The notes under the pieces are model-generated. The model had not been told where the DNA came from. It was given only the letters and a program-made list of their open reading frames with translations, and did no database searches. A stretch of 64,000 nt of DNA from Paragordius varius (lineage: Eukaryota > Animalia > Nematomorpha). Below are positions 13,501 to 63,500 of the stretch, one piece after another. Location of the stretch: the NCBI GenBank assembly GCA_964247055.1, contig OZ176051.1:6014001-6078000 (forward strand), written 5' to 3'. The position numbers were made by a program, and so were the translations under genes. Every line of letters begins with the position of its first letter. Positions within the stretch are counted from its first letter, which is position 1.

Positions 13501-16500
13501 AACCACATTAATATTATATCAAATAGTAGGTTAATAAAAACAAAACTAACTCCTTTTAATAATTAAAATTATAAAACATTTTTTGATTTTCATTTACCCA
13601 CAATTCTTTTTCAGTATATATATATAACCAAAAAAGAAAAGTACAAACTTGAGCAAAAACTTTGGCTTGTTGAATGACGGCATTACATGGGACAGGTATT
13701 CTCGTTTTAAGGCTACTTTGAAGTTCATCAATTATAACGTTACTGGCACGGTAAAGTTGAAGGCCAGCTTGAATTTCTTTATCCCCCAAATTTTTCCAAC
13801 AACCATTTTCACGCCAAAATTCAGAGTCTATGTCAGTTGGTAGGTTTTCATTACTGCAAAATTTTATTTAAATTAATTAAAGTATGATGGATGATAGCCA
13901 GTAAAATACTTAATCGCTGGTCTAATTAATAAATGAATCCTAAACAGTCATAATTAGTCAATTGACATGACCTCTTAAAATCAAAATAACAAATTAAATT
14001 GCTTACAGTAGGATTAGCATATAATAGTTGGAAATTTATACTTTTTATATAGAATTTTTCTCTATCACAGAATGATTAATTTCTATATACCTACGTTTAA
14101 TTTTTTCTATCGTTATTATTCAAACGATACTAAATGATTACATATTAATAACTGGTTAAACCCACACTTAATTAAAATTAATTTAAAAATAAAATCAATT
14201 ACTATATATTTCGTAAAATTTTTCTATCATAAATTTATATAAATTAAGTTACAATTTAATAAAATCTACTTTTGGATTGCATTATTATTGGCTGAGTTAA
14301 TCACAGCATTTTCACCCGTTATACAATTTATTTTTTTCTCCAATTCCTCCTTAAATAATCCATCCCCTTCTGCATAATCTAAAAAAAGAAAATTAATAAA
14401 AATGTAATATATTATTCATAAAATACTCAGGAAAATTAAAAAATTGAAGTAAAAGGAAAAAACTTTGATTAATGGCTGAAAGTAAATCATCCAATGAATG
14501 TAGGACTTGTTTGGCCGCCTTATCCAAATCATTCAATAAATTTTGTTCTTGAGTGATGGCCTAATAAAGGTAAAAATTTAATTAGTTTTTTCATATTAAA
14601 TATATATAAATATAGGTAAAGCTCTTTCCATTTAATTTTCTCAAATAAAAAGTGCTTACATGTAATATTCTTCAAAGTAACTAGTTTTAAAAACAATTTT
14701 GCATCTAACAAACAACAGTAAAAAATATTATTTTTTTATAAAGATGGCCATACTTTTTAAGACCATGATTTTTACATAAACTTTATTTGCAGATTTATAA
14801 TATATAAATAAGGGTTTAACTAATTTATACCTCTAGCGACGAAAAACGATAAGTTTTATACAAGATTAGGAAAGTTTAAAAATTATGGTCCTTTTTTAAA
14901 AAAATTTTTTTATGTTTACTTTTTTCTTTATAATTTATACTGTATAAGTAAAACAAAAAAGAATTTTACTATGTTATGTATATCATAAATATGTTTAAGT
15001 TTTTAAAAAGTCTAATAAAATTATTTTCCGATATTTGTGGTCACTATTTATTAAACTTACTTTTGCGACATGGACCACATTAGTTACAGAATTGGAGACA
15101 GAATCCACGCTATCAGCTGTTTGTTTTCGGCACACATCTTTAGTTATAGTTGGGGCCATAACCTAATTAATAAAATAAATTTATTATAAAAAATATATTA
15201 TTCCTAAAAACAAATCCCTTTAAATTTATAAAACCTTAACACAAGTAATAAGTTCTGAAGTTTTCATAGCGCATTTTGTGGCTGCCGCAACGATTCTATC
15301 CCTTCTAGCAAGGGATAACTTTTCAGCTTTGGGTGAAACTGAATTTGAATGGGATTTATCTGTATCAAGAGAAAAATTATTACACACATTTTATAAATAA
15401 AATTTTATAAAAAAAATTTGTTAATTTCTACTATATAATAAAAAATGGGAATTTTAGCATGAGGACCTAAAACGGAATTTTGACTTTTAATTAAAATGTA
15501 AATTATATTATTAACTGGCTTAAAAATGAGTTTTTTAAATGTAAATACATTATAGAGAATATAATTATATTAATATATATCTATAAGTACCATACTATAT
15601 AACTTAAATCTACAAAACAATAATATAAAAATTATTTTGCATGTAATAATAAACTCTTGGATTAAAGTAAAGATTTTAAGGCAAAATCGTATAAATAGGT
15701 TAACTTTTAAAAATGGGCCCATTAAGTCATAATTTTAAATTATTTGCTTTAACGTTTTTCCTAATCTATTAAATCTAACAAACAAGTACCATCATTATTT
15801 TTATTGAGTAATTTTTCCGATTTTAAAGTCATTGACGCGTCGTCTGAATCTGTAGTTGAAACTATTGAATTTTTTCTCTGATACATTTCCCCTCCACCCT
15901 CCTCCATAACATAATTTGCGATTCGTTTTGCACCCAAAACTAAATGAGCTGCACTATTTGCTACACCCTTGGCTAGACTCATAAGACGCGCCGTTGTAAG
16001 CTGATATTCTGTACTAACATTGTCAATATTTGAATTGTTAAAATCATTATTTTCGGCATTATTGCTGTTGCTGTGTTGTTGTTGAACACCATTCAACAGG
16101 GTTAAAACACGAGCCCCACACTCACCTACCCGGGATAAATGATTGGACATTTCTGTGATTCGACGTTTAGATATGTGGTGATGTGAACGCATACCATTCA
16201 TTGACTAATATATACATATACATATTTGTTTCTGAAAAAGGTAAAAACTAATTTATTGAATGTTTATTAAATAAATTATTATCATATCAATTTATACGAG
16301 ATTATTAAAATTTTGGAGGTAAATGACATTATATCTTTTTATTACATATTAAAATTATGTAATTGAAATATGAATGTTACGAGATGAAAAAATAGAGATT
16401 TGTTAAAATCGATGATAATAATATACTCGTTATTCATATTACAATGATTTTTAAAAATTATTTCATTCGAATTTATATTTTGTTACCTCTAACACATAAA

Positions 16501-18170
16501 ATGTAAATTATTTTTTAAAAGCCATGTTTATTTTTATTTTTTTCTATATAATCTTTATATTTAAAATTTATAAGTTGAGTGAGTCTATAACTTACATCAA
16601 TATCACTTATCAACAAACTCAAAAGATGAGGTTAATAAATTATGGTTGTTGTAAAATTTATTACCTAATCTATATATTTTTTTCTTATATTCATTCGGCT
16701 TTATGGGTGAATTAAAAATGTTAGCCAATCAAAAACTGTATAATATATTCAAACAATTTTATAGTTACTAAAATTTTTATAATAATTATGTAATTTTCTG
16801 GTCATAAAATTAACTCTGAGCTCAATATCATTTTCATTTTGGTCTTCTGTATCGCCTTTGAGACATTCTAGGAGGTTAGTTGTTGCAAGAGCTAATTCTT
16901 TTGCCGCACATAAAAGTTCCAATTTTTTGTCATCGCCCCCATTCATATCATCATTATTTATCATTCCTATAAAGCAATAATTACAATATATATAATATGA
17001 TCTGAAAAAATTTCCGCAAAAATAGATAAAATCAAACCCCCACTATATCCATTTGCACCGTTTTGGGTTTGATTTGCATGGGAATCATTGGTATTAATTT
17101 CGCCCAAAAGTGCTTCCAAAGCTTCGGCGACCTCAGTCACAGCTGAACGTAAAGTATTTTCTCGCATTTCGATGGCCGATGCCGAAGCCCATGCTTCACA
17201 ACTATTTGGCATTTTCGTTTCGTTTCTGATGATAAAAAATAAAAAAAATTTAATTTTCGATCTATTAATAAACTGCAAAACTTAAGTATGGAATATTTAT
17301 TGTAATTAATATTGTGAAAGGATTATATTTGCTGTAAAAATAAAAATCCTTAATATTCCTAAATAAAATCTTCAAAGTATTTACGTGGAATTTGTATCAC
17401 GATCGTTTGAATTAATACTGCCATTTCTTAATTCAATAGTTGTTGAATCACTATTCTCATCCTCTGAGCCATACGCTATTCTACATTCTTCTTCCTGATA
17501 GTAAGTTTCCTGTTCGTGACTAAGTGTCGATAAAATTGAAACAATTTTAGCCGAATTTGCCGTCAATTGGGCCAAACTGTCTTCGACAAAACGTACACGT
17601 CGTTTTTTACTTTTTTGCAGGGAGCTTTGATGCCCATCATCATTCATGACACCATCATGAGATTTTGCTATCAATAAAGAAATGAATTTTAAAGCAAAAA
17701 TGCAAATATGCTTGACGACGAAGAAAATTGTATACTCAATAATTTAAATGATTTTTGTCAAAATAGGGATAATCATTTATTTGAAGCATGCGTTTATTGC
17801 TCTACATTGTGCCTCACTTTAACTAAGCGCGAATTGGCATATTATGATTATGATATTATATAATATTAAAACTTATGTAATTTATATAAAGAGCACGTTG
17901 CCCATCCGAATTTAAAAATTGGATTAATAGTTTTTAAAATTAGGGCCTAAATATTAATATTTCATTTTAAATGAATTAAACCATGATAAATATTTTACGC
18001 AAGATAGAAAATAATAAAATATCAGTGTTTATCAGATTATTTTTATATTTAAAAACTGAAAATCAAATATATTTTCAGGGGTCCCTTATTTATCAAATTT
18101 TACAACATTTTTTGCCTATATAAACAAAAACTATGCACACTCTCACAACGTCTCTGTGGCGCAATCGGTC

Positions 18171-18216
<46 letters not shown>

Positions 18217-21200
18217 AGGGACGATTCTTTTTTTTCTTATAAAATTATATATTATTGCTATTTTAAATTAATGAAAAGAAGCACTAAATTATATTAATTT
18301 TTGTGCAGCTAATTATATTTTTTCATAATTGTCTAAAACACAAAAAGTGTACACCAAATTTCGATATCATATTATAGCTCTATACGGCTTTTGTTACCTA
18401 ACTTCTAATTAATAATGCTCTTTAAAGTAAATGAAAAAGTAGAATGCTTTAGCTAGTACTCATGTATAAAGGGTTTATTTTAAACAAAAAACTTGCAAAA
18501 TACTTAGACCATGAAATAAGATAAATGAATGCGCACACATAACTCACATTTTATTCCAACCTTTATGATCCGATTGTTGTGATCAATAATATCAAATAAA
18601 AATACAGTATGAGTAAGTATTTGCTAGTTATTCATTAATTATTGCCAGATAGCATATTCAGCAAAGATCAATATTATTGGATTATTTTTTTACTTTCAAA
18701 AATAATTCTCTTTGCTGATGCAATCCAACAATATTTAACCAAAAACTAGAAATGTATACTTACTCATAATGTGATTTCATTCTATTAGTCATAAGAAAAA
18801 AAATATCGCATTATTCAAACCTTTATTATCCGATTGTTGTGATGATAGACCTTGAATAGCTTGACCAATCCTTAGAATCCCATGTTCCAGACATTCCCTA
18901 TTGCGGCCATCTTGACTCAGCAGACGAGTCAGGCCAGATGCATGAGCTGGTCCATTCATACGGACACGACCACTTCGAGTTGCCATATCGGGAGCTCTAA
19001 CATTTGCATGCACTCTTAACATGTGTTCATCCGTTCTGCAATAAAAATTTGGAGTAAAAATGTTAGTCAGGTTGTTTAGCGCAAACTTTTTTGTATTACT
19101 GACCGACTGCATTCACACCTAAATTGAAAGCCAATTGGTAATTGGGGTATAGAAAAAAGTAGTTTTAAAACTCTAAATGACTACGAAAATTTCAAATGCT
19201 CTGCTCGGGATGTTTAAATAATAATATCAATAATTCAACAATTAACTCAATTTCCAACCCTTAGAAACAGTAAGCACTTTTTGCTAGCATTATATCAGCG
19301 GTGGTGGAACAGAACATACTATTAAACATCGCATATCACAAATATGGAATAAATACCATAAAAATGACAATAAATTCGTCAAACTACAAACTAAATGTGC
19401 CATTTATACAACCATTCATCCGTCCTTACTTACGGATCCGATCCTGGCCGATGTCAAAAAACGCTAAATCCAAATTACTAAAAACAATATTATTACACAA
19501 TCCATCTGAATTCAACTACTGAATCCATAAACCCGTACCATATACTCAATCTCAACCCCATCAACAACGTAATCAAGAATATCCGGTTACAATGGACTAG
19601 ACATGTTGAGAGACGGGAAGATACCCACATTCTTAAAACTATGAAAAATTACTCGGAACTACCGCGAAATCCGGCCGACCCCATACATGGATCAACACAA
19701 TAACTAAAGACCTCGAATCGCTTAATTTAAATCGAGAATTAGTCAGATCAACAAAATATTGTAAAAAATCAAAGAGTGTACTGTTATTTAATGGCGAATC
19801 CCCATACAAATTATGATGATATATATGAAAATATAATTTTGTTCATAATTAAATAAAACTTAATGTTGTGAGATAGAAAAAATTGCAATATCAACCAGTT
19901 CTTGTTTTATAACCATACGCTACTATATTGCCAAGTGATCAACAATAATCTGAATTAATCAATATTAATGTGCATACTATATATCAGTTAATTATAAAAA
20001 ATTATGTATCGTACTAATAAGTGCTAACAAGCACGAAACTAGTTTCGATTAAACTAGTGTGAAAGGGTTTATACATCTAACGTTTCAGTGATATTTTAAA
20101 TTATAATTTTTAGTTTTATTTTCGCATAAAATAAATTTTTTACAGTTAATTCTCATTAAATTTTCATTTTTATTTTATCAACTATTTGTTAATATATTTT
20201 CATACGCTTTTTGAAGCAAATTCGTTAACAAAATATAATATACCCGTTTATATTATCACTATTTTTGTTGGCACCTTGAAATTTTATGTACGTGGCCCTG
20301 TGAGGTGATATTACCTCCTCCATAAGCGCACTAGATTCATCATCTCGTCCAACCATTAAAGATTCTAAAATGTTATGATAATAAAAATTTATTTTTACAA
20401 TATGAAAAACCAAAAATATATTTAAAAACTGAAAATTTTGATTATCATACAATATATGGGTCATTTTATTATCCAATGTTATTTATATAATATTTAATTC
20501 TTTAAATGGGAATAAACCATCTAATTTTGATATATTATTGATCGTAAAAAATTTGATTTCCTAAAAAATAAGATTGATTGCATTATATTAGTGGCGGTTT
20601 TATCCATATTCTTTTTTCACCAAAACTCGCTTCTTAAAGAACCCTTTGTAATGTGTAAAAATGCCTTTTAACATCCCAAATACCAAATCCAAATAAATTA
20701 CTGGGTAAATTAATGATGGCAATTTCGTTGTAAGGAAAAATTGAAAAAATCAGATTTAATTATATACCCTGTATGCCAAATTCTTCGCCATATCGATTAG
20801 CAAAAGCTTCATCCATATACATAACACCATCGGCTCCAATCTTTTTCCCACCGAGTAATTTGTCTTTATTACGATTTTTGAGTATTATATCAATATACCC
20901 AGCTATGAGACCACTTATTTTTTCCCCTTCAGCCGTTTGTACACTGTAGTAACTATCCTACAAAATTTAGAGTCAAATAAATTTTAATAAGAAAAGTTAA
21001 CAGGTAGTAATATCTTTTATTCGAATATATTTTTGGGCGAGTCTCCTAACATTAGTTTTAGATTTAATAAAATAAAAAATTGTTTACTAAATTTTGTTTA
21101 TGGAAATATAATTTTGATACATTGTATTTCTGGCACTATATAACCTTTCCTTTTTTTATCTTTTTGTAGTTTCTACAAGCAAATTGTGAACTTTTCCATA

Positions 21201-31679: not shown

Positions 31680-33412
31680 AGGGGACATGATAAAACCTTA
31701 ACGAAACCCTAGCAGGTTGCGAAAATTCGGTTTTACGTGAAGGAAAGATAAGCTGAAACTTTATCAGAACAATATTAATTTCCTGGGTTTTGAGCTATCA
31801 AAACAAGGAATTCGTCCTGAACAAAATAAAATTGACGCCATTACGAAATGTGCGACATTTACCAATAAAGCGGAGTTAAGATCGTTTTCGGAATTGAATT
31901 TCCATGAACGCTTTAGTTCAGGCTTACATGTCAAAGTTAGCAATTTACATGCATTAACAGGATCCAAAAGGGAATGGAGATGGTCACAAGAACATCAAAA
32001 TGGATTTTAGCGAGCAAAAAACTTAATATCAAGAAAATTTTTACTTGCCACTTATAACATAAATAATATGACAATAATACAAGTAAATGCGTCTACAAAA
32101 GGCTTTGGAGCTGTATTTCTGCAAATAGAAAATGAGAGAATGGGTCCAATTGCATTCGCGTCAAGAAATGCCAGAATGCAGAAAAAAATTATTCTGTGAT
32201 TGAATTGGTAACTAAAGCTTTGCTATTTGAGTTAGAAAAATTTCATTATTATATATATGGCCCAATATGTGAGGTGTGGTCAGATCATAAGCCGTTAGTT
32301 TATTTATTCGGAAATAATCGGAAGTTAAGTGATATTAAAAACTGTGAATTGTTAAGATGGATCCACAAGGCCGCCGCGTATGATTTTGATATGAAATATA
32401 TCGCGGGATCGACAAACATGGCCGATGTGTTTTCAAGACTTCCCGAGAGTCAGACACCATTAGCCAATGAAGATGAATATATAGCCGAACAAATCCGACA
32501 AATCGCATTCGTGAATATGAATTCATTATAACCCAAATAAAAAAAAGATTGTTTGGAGGATAAACTATTTGAACGATTAAGTATGGCACTTAAAAATAAT
32601 GATTGGTTATCCCGGAATTATCCGCATTCAAAGCCGTGAAAAATGATCTTAAAAAAGCTGATGGTTTCTTTTATGTCGAACTCTTTTGGTTTTCCAAGAA
32701 TGTTAATATCTGATAATGCTACTTATTTCAAATCGTTCAATTTTCGAGAAAAGATGACAAACTGGAACATTAATCATGTGACGTCTGCTCCCTATCACCC
32801 AAGGACGATTGGTTTAATGGAAAGAGTGATTTACACGTTGAAATCCAGATTTCGTTCTACGGATGATTGGCATAAGTCAAGAGGCTTTAAATAATGTATT
32901 ATTGGCCTATCGAAACTCGTGGCCAAATGAAATAAAGACGACTCCCGCATAGTTGTTTTTGAAGAGGAACATTAACACACCGTTGAATTGGTTGCAAGAT
33001 CAAGAAGTGCCAAAAGAATGTACACCACCAATACCGTTAAGAGACTTCACACCCTCACAACCAATTTTCATAAAGAATGAGATAACGAAAGGATGGCGAC
33101 CGGGAACGGTGTAAGTACATTGTCATACAAAGTAAGTGATGAAGAAGGGAAAATGAGGAAACATGCGGATCAACTGGTCTGACGGTGGGCAGAGTATAGC
33201 CCCCAGGCGTTACACAGATCGAGTCCGCAAACCTCCTAGACTTTTTTTAGAGGATGAAATGATAAGTAGTTGATATAACACAACATTGCATGATTGTCTT
33301 TTTATCTTACATCATATTATTATTATATTAAACGCTTTTGGCATATGATCGTGCGTCATTATTCGTGGAATTCTGATATAAATATTCGTAGAATAAAAGA
33401 CATATTCTTACA
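31680..33412 (+). mobile_element. Decayed, 5'-truncated Ty3/Gypsy LTR retrotransposon (RT C-terminus, RNase H, integrase core, 3' LTR)
   Basis: Frameshifted pol: INFLGFELSKQGIRPEQNKIDAI, ASTKGFGAVFLQ...PIAFASR, VWSDHKPLVYLF...YIAGSTNMADVFSRLP (32196-32531), FGFPRMLISDNATYF...SAPYHPRTIGLMER (32643-32894), RKHADQL. The integrase zinc-finger region appears deleted. Confidence 0.93.
33260..33412 (+). repeat. 3' LTR of the Gypsy remnant
   Basis: TGATAAG...CTTACA inverted termini, preceded by the purine-rich tract AGAGGATGAAA and containing AATAAA near 33392. No partner 5' LTR seen. Confidence 0.65.
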
Positions 33413-36378: not shown

Positions 36379-51192
<14,814 letters not shown>

Positions 51193-51690
51193 AAAACTTA
51201 GTTATACCATCCCTATCTGTTGTTTGGGTAAACTAGAAAAAATGCGCATATGACTTTAACAAACACTTTATTCAAATGAAATTTCCAAAAACAAAATCTA
51301 ATGTGTTCAATTTGAAATGAATTTAACCAATAATATTTGTTACATTAATTTTAATAAAGTTTAAGAGTCTGCGGATTATATTTTAGAACGGCAAAAAGAA
51401 ACAAATCTACACATTAAAATAATTTTTTTTGATTATACAAAAAATTAAATTATAATAGTCACCAAATAATATATATGTTATCTATAATTCCAAAACATTT
51501 TTAGTTTTTCTTTCATAATAAGTGATGGACCAAAATATATTTAAAAACGATGTACATAGGGCCATAGTAATATCTGACTTATGTGTTACAAAATAAAAAA
51601 ATTAAACTATAGTATGGATTGTTAATCCTAGGATTCTAATGACTATATCACTGTTCGCCAAATCGAGGGTGCATAAAAATATACCAAACA

Positions 51691-52689: not shown

Positions 52690-52760
52690 TCAACACATTC
52701 ATTTTAGTCCTTCGATTCAAATTGGGGTAGTTGGATACCCCAGGCCTTTGTAAAGCAAAT
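52690..52760 (-). repeat. Dispersed repeat family X copy (inverted relative to the 54340 copy)
   Basis: AACACATTC...TTCGATTCAAATTGGGGTA...ATACCCCAGG. A same-orientation copy is at ~31160-31215. Confidence 0.7.
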
Positions 52761-54339: not shown

Positions 54340-54455
54340 ATAGAAGCATAAATTTAAATTAGGACTATTCTATTGGGTAGTTTTTTAAAAACACTAATTT
54401 GAAAAGGGTCTGGGGTATTTAGATACCCCAATTTGAATCGAAGTGTTAAATGTGT
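54340..54455 (+). repeat. Dispersed repeat family X copy
   Basis: AGAAGCATAAATTTAAATT.GGAC...CTGGGGTATTTAGATACCCCAATTTGAATCGAAGTGTTA. Further copies at ~31335-31430 and ~63260-63360. Confidence 0.75.
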
Positions 54456-55354: not shown

Positions 55355-55728
55355 TAGGTCTCCAAGCTTTTAAGCATGCTGGAGAATGCTTTGTGATAAA
55401 AAATGGAAGGACAAACTCACTAATGAATGGATTCAATACAATCACCTCTGAGACAAAATAACTTCCATGATCACTAAACGGCGATTAGGCTACTTTGATT
55501 ACGTCATCCGCAACGTCAAATTGGAAAACACAATCATGCTGGGCCTGGTAGAGGGTAAGCGAAAACGATGCACACCCAGAAAAGATGGTCAAAACATTTA
55601 ACAGACAACACCCACCTAACAATCTCCAATCTGATCAATTTATCCTCAGACAGATCAGCCTACAGAAAATTTCTCCATGAAGTCCAGAAAAAAGTTGAAT
55701 AATTAACCGCTGACATTCATTCATTCAT
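55355..55728 (+). mobile_element. RTE-clade LINE 3' end with (TTCA)n tail
   Basis: CWRMLCDKKWKDKLTNEWI...ITKRRLGYFDYVIRNVKLENTIMLGLVEGKRKRCTPRK, a typical RTE ORF2 C-terminus, ending in CATTCATTCATTCAT. Confidence 0.85.
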
Positions 55729-56544
55729 AGCTTAGGAAACGTAAAATAGGATAACCTATACAGGTTTATGCCATTTTTATATTTACACTAAAAATGTTAA
55801 ATATTTTTTAACCATTTTTATTTTATGATTGTTGATATTTTAGTAATAGTATTATAATAAAATTGTTATATAAAAACTTTACTAGAAAGACCAAATGAAA
55901 CCGGATCCAAATAAAAAGAATTTTTTTATTCTCGCGTACCATAGATTAAGTAATATATAATTTATGCTTTGCCGTTGATATAACATTTACAGCAAAATCC
56001 TAGAACATAATCCATCCGTCATGAATAAAATGAACAGTGGAATCGTAAGGCTATTTACAATAATTAAAATACGACAAATGCCATATACCTTATTCACGAC
56101 TAATTTCCTTAAAACCGAAAAGCGTAAAACTAAATATATATTTAAAAAATTGCCTTCAGACAGAGCTTTAAAAATAAAATATATCCTATTATTTATTTTT
56201 ATTTCTTTAATATCAAATACACTTTTATCACCATTCCTTTATCGCATCACAAAGCCCGACAAATTGATAGGTAAATTCTCACCGTGACTATCAAAACTAA
56301 ATTGATTATTATTTTTTTGTTTACGTCTTTAAGGTTCTTTATAGTGGGATAATCGGATGACTAAGCAAGTTATTGATTTAAATAATTGTTGAATCCATTA
56401 TTGATTGGAATATTCATTAGTATCGTTCCACAAATCTGAATAAAAGTTTGCTTCAATATCAATGTTTAAATTTTGTTTTCTTCTTTGATTTCTGTAATTG
56501 GAAAAATTATGACTTAAACTCTCATTTTCAGTTGATGCTTTTTA

Positions 56545-57448
56545 TTATATCCATATTTTTTCATTCGAAAAATTGCGTTCGCTTAATGAGCCTTGATTGT
56601 TACGCAAAATGCTTTTAAGAGGTGCCAGTAATGTTGTATTGTTTGTACTATTAATCTTGCCATGAATGGAGGAAATACTTGGATTTGGCCGTCTTCTAAA
56701 AGAAATAACAAAATAACAATTTCAATTTTCGTAAAAAGAGAATTTTCTCACTATATGAATTAAATTATACTTGTTGGATTCGATGGAATAATCAAACGAT
56801 TGCACCGATTCATCTGCTAAATCTGCTATTTCGGCAAATTGTTTCATCAGTCTGTATTCTCTATCTGATGTTTGAGGATTCGTTTCCTTTCCTAAATATG
56901 ATTAACCAATTTATAATTAATATGTTTAAACCTGAAAATGTTTCCGTGTAGGACTAATAAAATGTATGCTGATGCATGCCATTAATAAATAATCACATTG
57001 CAATAATAGGTTAAATTAAAATTACAATCATGTTGAAGCAATTTTGTGAAAAACATCATATCAATTCGAATTCAATGGATAATATAGGAGGAGTTTACAA
57101 AAATATAGGTACTCAAAATCGTCACTTTAAAATTACATTTGGACAAAGTATAGAATTATCATCTGAATAAGTCTTTTCTTTAATGAATATACCGATCAAA
57201 AGCTAAGCCTTTATAACAATGGATAAGAGTTTTAGATTCCGCAAAACCAGCACAAAAATTGTTAGAAAATTTTGAGGAAAACTTATAGACTCATTTAAAG
57301 TCAAATTTAATCTCCTGTTTTCCATAATTAGTTAAAAATGTTTTAAACTGTTGCGTAAAAATTAAACTATACTAAATCGTTAGTCGGAAGCTTAAAAATG
57401 CGAACCTTTACAAATATCATGATTTGCAGATACACTATTTTGTATAGT

Positions 57449-57490
<42 letters not shown>

Positions 57491-59282
57491 TGCTTGCAAT
57501 CCATCGAAACCGGTTCTTGCCCAAATCTAAAGGTCTGATCCCGATTCCAGAAGGTTCCGGTTTTAAGCCGTTAAAATCCAATAAGGTCAAAACAAATTTA
57601 GTTTATGTTTGCGCAACTTACCAAATATCATTTTAAAAACTTAATGATATATAATAAACTCGGTTTTTCATCATAATTATACATTAATTAAATTAATACG
57701 ACGCGTGATAGGACGCATTATGAATTATGGTATCATAAATGGATTAATAAAAATATTTTAGTTATAAATTTGATTAAAGCATGATACAATCCAAACAATA
57801 TTATGTAATACCAGATGTCCGTATTCTCCGTAGTTCTGCATTTAACTCATATTTATGTCTTAATGTACATCCCTCTATAGTCTTATCTTGGCTTTTGCAA
57901 TTTGGAAAAACTCTTGCTTGGAAAGAATTGTAAAGTTGCGATGGATTAGCATTAATTACCATTTCACTTTCATTTGGTTTGATTTGATCTATCCATCTTA
58001 CTTTCTTTCTTGATTTCGATGCAGGATTGATCAGGTTTTCGTCACTATTATCATCGGAAGTATTCTTTGGCTTAGAAATATTTAAACTTTTATCCAAACT
58101 TTTTTGTGTTTGATTATGAGGATGATCCATAATTATAGCGTCTTTTAACATATGATTTGCTTTAGTATTTGTATAAACATTTAATTTAAATGGTTTAGCA
58201 CTCACTGGGTTTATCTCCAATGGATGAAAATGGCTATCAGCCTTGTTGACCTCTTTTATTATTTGTTTTGCAATGATATGTGTAAATTCCCTCAGCCTTA
58301 ATATTTTAATAATCACTGTGTTTATCTCCGTAGGATGTAAATGACCATCAGCTTTGTTGACCTCTTTTATTATTTCATTAGCAATGTTATTTGTAAAATC
58401 CCTCAGCCTTGATGTTTGAGCAATCACTAGATTTAGATCCGATGGGCGACTACCATCTCCCTTATTGACCACTTTTATGATTTGACTTGCAATCATATTT
58501 GTAAAATCACTCAGCCTTAAAGTTTTAGCAATCACTGGGTTAAGATCCGACGGATGCAAATGGCTGTGAGCTTTGAGTTTGATCTCTTTTATTATTTGAT
58601 CTGAAATGATGTTTGTAAAATCCCTCAGTCTTAATGTTTTAGCGATCACTGGGTTTATGTCCGATGGATGCCAAAAACTATCAGTCTTGTTGACCTCTTT
58701 TATTATTTGATTTGCAATGATATTTGTAAAATCTCTCAACCTTATTATTTTTGCAATCACTGGGTTTATCTCCCATGTAGAATAGCTATCAGCCTTGTAT
58801 ACCTCTTTTATTATTTGATTTGTAATGATATTGGTATAATCACTCAGCCTTAATGTTTTAGTAATCACTGGGTTTATCTTCGATGGATGCAAATGACTTC
58901 CAGCTTTATTGACATCTTTAATAATATGATTTATAATGAGATTTGCGAATTCCCTTAGCCTTAGTGTTTTACCAATTACTGGGTTTATGTCCAATGGGTG
59001 CAAATCAGCTTTGTATACCTCTTTTATTATTTGATTGGCAACGATATTCGTAAAATCACTCAGCCTTAATGTTTTAGCAATCACTGGGTTTATCTTCAAT
59101 GGATGCAAATGACTATCAGCTCTGAGTTTGGCTTCATTTATTCTTTGATTTGTGGAGATATTTGCATAATCCTTCAACTTCGATTCCTTTACGTTATGAA
59201 TAGGTGTACAGTGGTATTTTGTTTTTGGATTCGAAATTAAATCGTTTTTGTTCGCACACAATGTGTGAGAATCAATAAACAT
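56545..59282 (-). CDS. Uncharacterised tandem-repeat protein (~580 aa): nine ~37-aa amphipathic-helix repeats; candidate PKA/PP1 scaffold
   Basis: A 493-codon ORF (57801-59282) stays open in very AT-rich DNA. A donor at TCT G|GTATT (exon 57812-59282) joins in phase to exon 56771-56891 (GKETNPQTSDREYRLMKQFAEIADLADESVQSFDYSIESN) and exon 56545-56695 (KRRPNPS...LKSILRNN...KIWI*). Repeats at ~58140-59125 keep frame despite indels. No family recognised with certainty. The 5' end (AG immediately before the ATG) and the last exon are less certain. Confidence 0.7.
57451..57488. repeat. (AT)n microsatellite
   Basis: Pure AT run. Similar runs at ~7572-7599, 8246-8266, 13376-13400, 28894-28923 and 34202-34234. 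Confidence 0.95.
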
Positions 59283-60570: not shown

Positions 60571-63500
60571 AGAGTGCCTTAAAATTGCCTATGACCATAT
60601 TGATACTTAGATTATTTTTATTGATGAATTTTTAAAATAACGAATTTTCGCTTATTTTAATATTAATTTATTTTCTTTAGATTTAATTTTGGTAATTTTT
60701 ATTTTTTAAGCAATTTGAAATGTAGATTAATTTTCCTACATTCTTCGGGTTGATTTTCCACTAATTGTAAATTTTATTTTACATTAATTTATATACATTA
60801 TAATTTCCGCTCATATGAAATAAAATAAAACAGTATACCGTCATAAACTGAGAAACAAAAATATGAAAAAATAAAAAAACACTATTTTTATATAAGTATT
60901 TTTTATTTAATAAAATATGAATGGTAAGATTTAAATAGTGAGTTTGGCTAATAAATAATTAAAAAAAATGTTTTAATATAGTTTCATAAAAATTTTTTGT
61001 CTTCTAAATGTGTTTAAACAAAATTGCCATCTTTGAGCTGAGATTTTATAGAAACCCTAACTATATGATTTCAGGCTATCTTTATATTAAAAATATCTCC
61101 TAAAATGATAACAAACCATAAAATTTCAAATTTGATTTTTTTTGAATTATCCTTAATTTTCACTTTTTTCCCGATTTCGATTCAAAATTAGGCCCAAACT
61201 CCCAAAGTAATGTCAAAGGTCTATGTCGAGTCAAATGTAGTTATTTTAAGAATTATATTTGGTGCAAAAGAGGACATCTATTGCTTCTAAATGAGTGTGG
61301 CCTTTAAGGTAGACCAATTTTGGAGATATTGGACATGAGAGTGTTGAGGTTACTCCTTCGTGCGACCATGTTTCAGCTGTACATCCAACTGAGATTCTAA
61401 CCCGGGATAAATAACCGGCGATAATTCCTTTGAACCAACTCTCAACTTCGGTAAGAGATGCCAAAGATTGGTAAACCAGCCCTGCTCAATCAGCGGTTAC
61501 GACATTGCTTCCCAGGACGTCATTAATTGACAGGTAATCTCGTCGGAGTCGGATCTTGCTGTTTGAAACGGTAAATAAAGCTCGTGTCATAATAGAGATC
61601 AATCCACAACATTAGCCATAACTCTTTTCCAAAGAATTATATAAAAAAAATTTATATACCTTAATCCGGCATGGAAATTAACATTAAAATAAACAACCGA
61701 GTCTGCAATAAAACCATTTCATATGTCAGAGTAAAATATCCAGCTTAAATAAAATGCCGAAGGTTGGTGATTAGCCCTGCTAATATATCCGCGGCTCTAA
61801 GGTCACCGTTTGACAATGGTTAGCCATTAGTTTCGTTTTTTAAATTGATCATTAGATAACATTTTTTTCTATCATCCAAGAAATAGAATTACTATGTCAA
61901 CATTTTTTTTTATCTTACCTTTTAACACTTGAAGATAACCACAAACATAATTATTTACGAGATTTTTTTTATTCTATAGAATATAGACATTTTTATTAAT
62001 AATCTGGTAAAAAACAATAATCTATAATTTCCACAATCAATTACTCATAACAAAAAGAGCAGCACTATATATCAATGGTAATAAAACCGCGGCCCACGGG
62101 CCTCATCGGGCCCTCAAGATTTGCGGTACATATTACGGCTACCAACATAGAAGAAACTTTTCACACTATATATATTTTCAAATCTGAAAAGTAGTCTGAC
62201 GACCGATTTGGTTGGTCAATTATGTTAGTTTCCTTTATAGATGTAGTCATACTTATTTTGCACTCATACATTTGGCTCTTGATTGTTTAATAAATTGAGT
62301 ATGTTTTAATTTATATGATAATAAAAATGTTGTATGAAAATCATATAATGAATAGTCAGAAAATGGAACTGGTTCCACAACCTTTAACTTATTATCAGAC
62401 CCATGTCCCCACTTGATCAGGGACGACCCAGCTTCCGGTAATTTTAACAGTCACCTAGGTTTCATTTTGAAAATCGTAAAACCAAACTGGTTACACCACT
62501 TTTTTTGAACGGGTATATATGTATTCTCTTCACCTTTTAAAATAAACGGTATTATCTAATTGGGTGTGAAATAAATGTTTTAGGTGATAAAGAAAAGACA
62601 TGACATAAGTTTTTTATCGCCGATCTTAGAGTGCAGACTTGCTGGCTAAAAAACTTGCTGAACTTGCCCTTTTTACTTCAGAGTCAAGTGTGCTTCTTTT
62701 ATCACCCCTACTCTTTACAAATCCTTTTTTACGTTCGATACGAATTGGTGGCCCAAAGATCAGTTGTAATGAAGTATTTTATTAAATATGGAAGGTATGA
62801 ATCGATATCAGTAGTTTACATTTTAACATTATTGATGCGCCAGAATATGAAGAAAATTTATTCAAAATGACTAGTTCATATATTAAGCTTAGGCAAAAGT
62901 TTAGACAGCATTAAAATATTACTTTTTATTTTTCTGTCTTTATATTGTTTAATGCATTAATTGAGCTGTAAAATCTAAAAAAAGACATTTTTCATAAGTT
63001 TTGAGATAATAATGGCGTCGAAATTTTTGTGAAAATATTTCTCAAAATTTACCTCAATAATATAGCTTTAGATTATTTTATGAAGATAAAATCTTAAATT
63101 TGAATGTAGCTCGCTTTAGTAATTTTTGGATCATCAGTTTAAATTACTGGCCTATCCAGTGCCCCTGTATCTAATTGTAAATTATTTTTGTAAAGATAAA
63201 AGCGTAAATTAAATTGAGACTAAATAGTTTTCAAATTTTATCAATTTAAAGATGGCTTATAGAAGCATAAATTTAAATTGGGACCTCAGTAGTTGTTAAA
63301 AAATCCTAACTCAAATTTAGTCTGGGGGATTTAGATGCCCCAAATGGAATCGAAGTGTTATAATCTATATCTATATATTGGTTAAAATATAACTTAGAAT
63401 TCACAAAAAAATATATGTATATATATTGATAGGATGGTGCTTTTGGTTTTGTCTTTTACGGGTGATTTAAGAAAGTTATTCTCACTTTTGTGGTTACTGC

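Follow-up and report, generated by a model that had tools for sequence, protein, structure and literature searches.

The window analysed here comprises 64 kb of the nematomorph Paragordius varius (contig OZ176051.1, positions 6,014,001 to 6,078,000), an AT-rich, animal-like DNA with 27% G+C. On its minus strand lies an intact open reading frame (ORF) at 57801-59282, which runs from an ATG to a TAA and is the sole ORF longer than 150 aa in the whole window. The predicted product of 493 aa has a mass of 56 kDa and a pI of 9.6, and contains nine tandem units between a unique N-terminal region and a unique polar tail. In the same frame, a stop is found 26 codons upstream of the ATG. The ATG of a kinesin heavy chain gene is located about 6.6 kb downstream of the ORF, on the same strand.

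The nine-unit array and its reading frame

Analysis with Tandem Repeats Finder revealed a period of 111 nt at 58189-59152, with 8.7 copies, 75% matches and a score of 1027. Nine units of about 35-38 aa each were resolved at 58134-59129, in agreement with the original prediction, which had placed nine tandem units with an identical consensus at ~58140-59125. Each unit consists of a variable His/Pro-rich linker of 8-12 residues followed by a 27-residue core, with the overall consensus KADSHLHPxxINPVIAKTLRLRDFTNIIANQIIKEVN. The core DNA of units 1-8 is 72-93% identical, and that of unit 9 shares 62-69% identity with the others. The hydrophobic spacing L-x-x-[FY]-x-x-x-I-x-x-x-I-I-x-x-V, which had been proposed for all units, is recovered in units 1-8. 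Because the units copy one ancestor, this pattern counts as a single occurrence, and it arises in 5.7% of shuffles of one unit. The residue at position 5 of the helix is, as previously noted, usually Thr (eight of the nine units), the exception being an Ala in unit 2.

The array contains neither stops nor frameshifts despite a divergence of about 20% among its units; the median frame of the window has 11 stops per 150 codons. Placing the 130 observed substitutions randomly on the unit consensus generated a mean of 4.7 stops, and only 0.66% of the trials were free of them. The indels between units, of which there are at least four, are 3 or 6 nt long and thus all multiples of three. Pairwise differences at codon positions 1, 2, and 3 amount to 136, 74, and 204, respectively, and the ratio of nonsynonymous to synonymous differences per site (pN/pS) is 0.46. 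The 161 codons outside the repeats are likewise open, with a chance probability below 1e-5 at the ~0.085 stops per codon given by the flanking composition.

Composition on the coding strand follows the same limits. Over 59200-57801, the binned A-T skew is +0.17 to +0.25 and G+C is raised, while the skew falls to the background value of -0.06 in the first bin past the ORF stop; ahead of the ATG, skew and G+C are both low. The ORF is taken as coding because its openness, the in-frame indels, the codon-position excess, and the composition agree. Two points speak against this conclusion: the pN/pS signal is modest, with one off-frame control giving 0.61, and the skew of the minimal substitutions by codon position (25/20/38) is weak. 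On balance, 57801-59282 very probably corresponds to a real protein-coding gene, and the composition boundaries make it probable that this gene has a single exon. We regard the ORF as a genuine gene, or as one that lost its function only very recently. The coordinates of the ORF and of its parts are collected in the table.

Table. Positions of the ORF, its repeat units and motif, and the open stretches beyond its stop (coordinates within the window)
Feature	Coordinates	Strand	Residues	Remarks
Complete ORF	57801..59282	-	493 aa	Composition boundaries match the ATG and the stop
Unique N-terminal region	59130..59282	-	1-51	No Pfam match
Repeat unit 1	59013..59129	-	52-90	
Repeat unit 2	58908..59012	-	91-125	Sole F-A unit (others F-T); linker 6 nt shorter
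Repeat unit 3	58797..58907	-	126-162	Core DNA 93% identical to unit 1
Repeat unit 4	58689..58796	-	163-198	
Repeat unit 5	58578..58688	-	199-235	
Repeat unit 6	58464..58577	-	236-273	
Repeat unit 7	58356..58463	-	274-309	
Repeat unit 8	58245..58355	-	310-346	
Repeat unit 9	58134..58244	-	347-383	Degenerate terminal unit
Unique polar C-terminal tail	57804..58133	-	384-493	Nothing above threshold in Pfam
RKKVRW	57993..58010	-	425-430	Candidate PP1-docking RVxF motif, extended type
Putative exons 2 and 3	56548..56901	-		Open stretches 56901-56725 (59 codons) and 56721-56548 (58 codons) in one frame

Predicted fold and search for relatives

A usable AlphaFold model was obtained for units 4-6, using a three-row alignment in which the non-overlapping units 1-3 and 7-9 provide the two additional rows. 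Its confidence is modest, with a predicted local distance difference test (pLDDT) value of 73 and a predicted template modelling score (pTM) of 0.61. In this model, each unit is predicted to be a single uninterrupted helix, roughly 30 residues long (H7-37, H44-76, and H82-110), with the His/Pro loops in between, and the helices are arranged in a generic antiparallel manner. The hydrophobic stripe of the helix is broad and heptad-like (I, V, I, L, L, F, I, I, I, I, V), a distribution that is suggestive of multi-helix packing. Shape searches with Foldseek against the Protein Data Bank (PDB) and in the ESM Atlas returned designed bundles, the vinculin tail, the FAT domain, and phasin as the nearest folds.

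The model would be compatible with a helical scaffold packed on itself, to which we assign slightly less than an even chance. Several observations limit its weight. The whole protein, predicted from its single sequence, reached a pLDDT of 36.6 and is unusable; the fold matches are generic and non-significant (best E 0.41); and the alignment behind the model has three rows, all drawn from the protein's own repeats. In addition, the bundling of amphipathic helices is a tendency of AlphaFold itself. The predicted architecture of tandem, antiparallel helical units of ~37 residues is shared with alpha-helical repeat proteins (HEAT, TPR, PUF, spectrin-like) and with designed bundles. The array has one helix per unit, whereas the unit of such proteins is a hairpin or comprises three helices.

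The original prediction had described the product as an unknown protein, and this description holds for all collections that were searched. In Pfam, no family matched the ORF at the curated threshold, the best rows reaching 12-22 bits against cut-offs of 25-27 and belonging to unrelated families; none of the known alpha-helical repeat families (HEAT, TPR, PUF, PPR, Sel1, and others) matched at threshold. A phmmer search against 1.84 billion representative proteins gave 0 matches at E <= 0.001, and neither a word search nor searches of the ESM Atlas retrieved a relative. Searching the PDB with the protein sequence and with a unit profile, in a sequence set that excludes peptides shorter than 20 residues, yielded only a chance match to ribosomal protein L27. 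No relative was detected in the metagenome and prokaryote contigs scanned, an exact look-up of the product in public assemblies returned no record, and the 64-kb window holds no second copy of the array. The protein-language-model recognition score of the product is low.

The significance of these blanks depends on the content of the collections. A stalk exon of the neighboring kinesin gene, used as a control, was also matchless in the protein collection, and the ORF did not retrieve itself. The blank control indicates that the collections probably lack the clade of this animal, at least as far as fragments of 70-224 aa are concerned, and that the negative searches say little about close relatives. 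The orphan status of the protein is thus to be read as nothing detected outside the clade and not as species specificity, and it is weak within the clade.

Candidate docking sites for PP1 and protein kinase A

The polar tail of the protein contains the motif KKVRW, found as originally reported at 57993-58007 (residues 426-430), where it had been proposed to dock protein phosphatase 1 (PP1). The loose RVxF pattern occurs at random in ~25% of proteins (PMC4794898), and an extended consensus, [KR][KR][ACHKMNQRSTV]V[CHKNQRST][FW], was chosen for specificity (PMC4794898). With one more residue included, RKKVRW fits both the loose pattern and this stringent consensus, and the extended form appears in 0.4% of shuffles of the ORF protein. 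Disorder is expected around PP1 motifs (PMC11536154). The surroundings of RKKVRW are polar and of low hydrophobicity, basic on its N-terminal side and acidic on its C-terminal side, and no helix is predicted over residues 381-446, where the low-confidence single-sequence model has a pLDDT of ~30.

Other features reduce the weight of the motif. RVxF is short, and even the extended form was found in 55 proteins of the predicted proteome of Plasmodium falciparum (PMC4794898). The same residues can equally be read as a basic, nuclear-localisation-like cluster (KKVR). The ORF holds no second PP1 motif, neither [GS]IL[RK] (SILK) nor MyPhoNE. Compared to RVxF-type PP1-interacting proteins, the ORF product, a candidate member, shares the extended consensus within a polar, probably disordered tail, but it differs in having no second PP1 motif and no relation to the named families of PP1 regulators. 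RKKVRW is a fair candidate and the best single functional handle that the protein offers; functional docking of PP1 there is, in our estimate, clearly less likely than not.

The original prediction had combined the RVxF motif with a second, SILK-type motif, KSILR, in a third exon. The first of these stands, in its extended form. KSILR does exist at 56602-56616, within an open stretch of 58 codons, but it lies 1.2 kb beyond the ORF stop, and it would be C-terminal to RVxF, whereas in the SILK-bearing design SILK is N-terminal to RVxF (PMC11536154). Because of its position past the stop, KSILR can belong to the protein only if two putative introns exist. In such a three-exon gene, the coding sequence would leave the ORF shortly ahead of its stop and continue in two exons further downstream, at ~56.9-56.5 kb, gaining about 97 residues that include KSILR. 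This arrangement draws on two neighboring open stretches that share a frame (59 and 58 codons), on GT and AG sites of compatible phase that are visible by eye, on the occurrence of short introns elsewhere in the genome (the kinesin gene has introns of 33 and 56 nt), and on a mild A-excess over 57000-56801. However, the ORF has its own stop, coding-type composition ends there, at 57801, and the bin containing KSILR has an A-T skew of -0.02 and no coding-type composition. In addition, the stretch of the putative exons is not among the stop-poor regions of the window, neither piece matches a Pfam family, and GT and AG sites are abundant in DNA of 27% G+C. The three-exon model was consequently not upheld, and we consider it quite unlikely. 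As a separate observation, one frame on the minus strand of 56401-56901 is interrupted only by single stops, leaving successive open stretches of 59, 58, and 47 codons that are partly A-rich, which could be a decayed coding remnant or due to chance.

The helices themselves had been compared to those of A-kinase anchoring proteins (AKAPs), which dock the dimerization/docking (D/D) domains of protein kinase A (PKA). Helices that bind the type I regulatory subunit (RI) span 14-18 residues with hydrophobic residues at positions 2, 5, 6, 9, 10, 13, 14, and 17 (PMC12083921). Their first position is F or Y and their second a near-invariant Ala, this FA motif being 96-98% conserved (PMC12083921). RIAD is a synthetic, RI-selective disruptor with a dissociation constant (KD) of 1 nM for RI-alpha (PMC4526808). 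Transferred to the array, each unit would present its C-terminal 18 residues as a free helix to which a dimeric D/D four-helix bundle could dock, either of the PKA RI type or of the DPY-30/R1D2/R2D2 type, and up to nine dimers would be clustered beside PP1 bound at RKKVRW. Such an assembly is unlikely in our estimate.

The resemblance to RIAD, which did not figure in the original prediction, is a stronger argument for it than the spacing pattern. Aligned without gaps, LRDFTNIIANQIIKEVNK and RIAD (LEQYANQLADQIIKEATE) are identical at 8 of 18 positions, including the run QIIKE, with a BLOSUM62 score of 41. This score is reached by none of 3000 shuffles of the unit and, among random residues, by 0-0.25 RIAD-like matches per 5 million, and all nine units score 31-41. 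Position 1 is F or Y in 9/9 units, and hydrophobic residues occupy the RI positions 5, 6, 9, 10, and 13. The hydrophobic moment of the 18-mer (0.43) is close to that of AKAP-is (0.44; 0.44-0.50 for AKAP-is, RIAD, and Ht31). Multivalent anchoring of RI has small-scale precedents in SKIP and AKAP220, with two helices each, and RKKVRW provides a good RVxF motif for the clustering of PP1.

Against this, the near-invariant Ala at position 2 is replaced by Thr in 8/9 units and is present in unit 2 only. On the RI face, five of the eight positions fit (I5, A6, I9, I10, and V13) and three depart from it (T2, N14, and D17); the RIAD peptide, for its part, carries Thr at 14 and stops at 15. The 18-mer carries a net charge of +1, compared to -3 for RIAD, -1 for AKAP-is, and -4 for Ht31, and AKAP-is, Super-AKAP-is, Ht31, and the AKB peptides align to the unit at chance level. 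The amphipathic helix of 14-18 residues is present by prediction, within a helix predicted to extend over about 30 residues and not as an isolated 14-18-mer. Profile searches for AKAP families found no match in Pfam at E values up to 10, and no AKAP-containing PDB chain was matched. Natural proteins are rich in amphipathic helices, which places the chance rate of RIAD-like matches well above the random-residue figure, and the scan selects for such resemblances. Two further points carry little weight: a Hundsrucker-type AKAP signature pattern matches unit 2 only, and the 25 residues around this match have a pI of ~10, at odds with a criterion of acidic pI.

In comparison with the RI-selective helices of RIAD, smAKAP, SKIP, and the distal site of AKAP220, the array shares an aromatic residue with hydrophobic pairs after it, at i+4/5 and i+8/9, and, as in SKIP and AKAP220, several helix copies per protein. 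It differs in having nine copies instead of one or two, in the basic character of its helix, where RI-selective helices are acidic, and in the embedding of this helix in a 30-residue repeat helix, where RI-selective helices are isolated in a disordered region. There is no sequence-family relation. Thus, of the AKAP comparison, the nine amphipathic helices and the likeness to RIAD stand, whereas the defining Ala, the charge, and a match to an AKAP family are missing. The protein is not a demonstrable AKAP, and an AKAP-like action appears rather improbable. We would give similarly little credence to a convergent, multivalent scaffold outside the known AKAP families, in which nine RIAD-like helices would dock a D/D-type bundle (PKA RI, DPY-30, or other) and RKKVRW would recruit PP1.

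Competing explanations, genomic setting, and significance

The locus is best explained as a lineage-restricted, single-exon, protein-coding gene with a basic product of 56 kDa, presumably intracellular. The nine tandem units of the protein would be preceded by a short head of unique sequence and followed by a polar tail that is probably disordered. Each unit would form one amphipathic helix of ~30 residues, the units being joined by short His/Pro-rich loops, and the helices would most likely pack in an antiparallel manner into an elongated array serving as a scaffold for protein-protein interactions, with RKKVRW in the tail as a candidate docking site for PP1. A lineage-restricted helical-repeat scaffold gene with such a site has, as a whole, about an even chance of being correct. 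With regard to the original prediction, the observation was confirmed and its interpretation is partly supported.

Nine amphipathic helices in tandem, separated by Pro-containing loops, could also belong to a surface-active protein that covers lipid droplets or membranes in the manner of exchangeable apolipoproteins or perilipins. The mean hydrophobicity near zero, the hydrophobic moment of 0.36-0.43, and the phasin-like shapes among the nearest predicted folds would suit such a role, and proline-punctuated tandem amphipathic helices are a feature shared with apolipoproteins, perilipins, and phasins. However, the N-terminal region (residues 1-51) is not hydrophobic and hence offers no signal-peptide-like start, the period of 37 residues differs from one of 11 or 22, and the sequence is unrelated to families of the apolipoprotein, perilipin, or phasin type. 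Lipid binding would also leave the conserved polar residues N14, R22, and K36 (alignment numbering) unexplained, and we consider this role unlikely. An equally unlikely origin is a young or decaying ORF with no specific function, in which a tandem amplification is still open by chance. The identity of 72-93% between unit DNAs does indicate a young array, no relatives were found anywhere searched, the protein-language-model score is low, and the selection signal is modest. Such an ORF is nevertheless difficult to reconcile with the openness of the array under random substitution (P = 0.0066), with indels that are all in frame, with 161 open unique codons, and with a sharp coding-type composition confined to the ORF.

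A mobile origin, in which the array would be satellite DNA or be carried by a transposon, is very improbable. The ORF does contain a tandem array, and retroelement debris is present nearby at 55.4-55.7 kb, but the array keeps its frame and occurs as one copy in the window. The direct repeats that flank it at 54.3 and 63.3 kb belong to a dispersed element found at 52.7 kb as well, and Pfam detects no transposase, reverse transcriptase (RT), or other mobile-element domain in the ORF. This reading was rejected owing to the absence of terminal repeats, of extra copies in the window, and of mobile-element domains. The preferred reading remains that of a lineage-restricted gene for a helical-repeat scaffold.

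Several other elements were observed in the window. The dispersed element of ~100 nt has a palindromic core, GGGGTATTTAGATACCCC, and is present at 52703-52754, 54340-54450, and 63259-63360, with one copy inverted; it is probably a repeat resembling miniature inverted-repeat transposable elements (MITEs) or short interspersed nuclear elements (SINEs). Two retroelement remnants lie on the plus strand: a fragment at 55467-55601 that ends in ...EGKRKRCTPRKDGQNI, and an RNase H-like RT domain at 32196-32531 (Pfam RT_RNaseH, E 1.8e-06). The kinesin heavy chain gene occupies 37100-51200 on the minus strand, with the ATG of its first coding exon near 51192 and further exons encoding the P-loop (50.7 kb), switch I/II (48.6 kb), and the stalk (37-39 kb). 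Among its introns are two short ones, of 33 nt (50755-50787, GTAAAT...ATAATAG) and 56 nt, and the longest reach ~2 kb. One intron of this gene contains, at 40597-41902, a large palindrome made of two opposed tandem arrays of a 117-118-nt unit, with arms of 313 nt that are 91% complementary and 680 nt apart; the unit starts with CAGGTAAAA, resembling an exon end followed by a splice donor. Rfam yields a single match at gathering score for the window, a tRNA gene at 18150-18223 (+). Finally, an open stretch of 146 aa at 15761-16201 (-), with one stop per 150 codons around it and no Pfam match, probably forms an exon of some gene.

The array protein offers a compact, testable case, as a natural sequence that is identical at 8/18 positions to the engineered RI-anchoring disruptor RIAD. 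Should the binding of D/D domains and of PP1 both fail, it would be an ordinary orphan repeat protein, and a caution that likeness to amphipathic helices and to short linear motifs is a weak basis for assigning function. If it is expressed, the ORF would extend the repertoire of an animal genome by a helical-repeat family that is restricted to its lineage.

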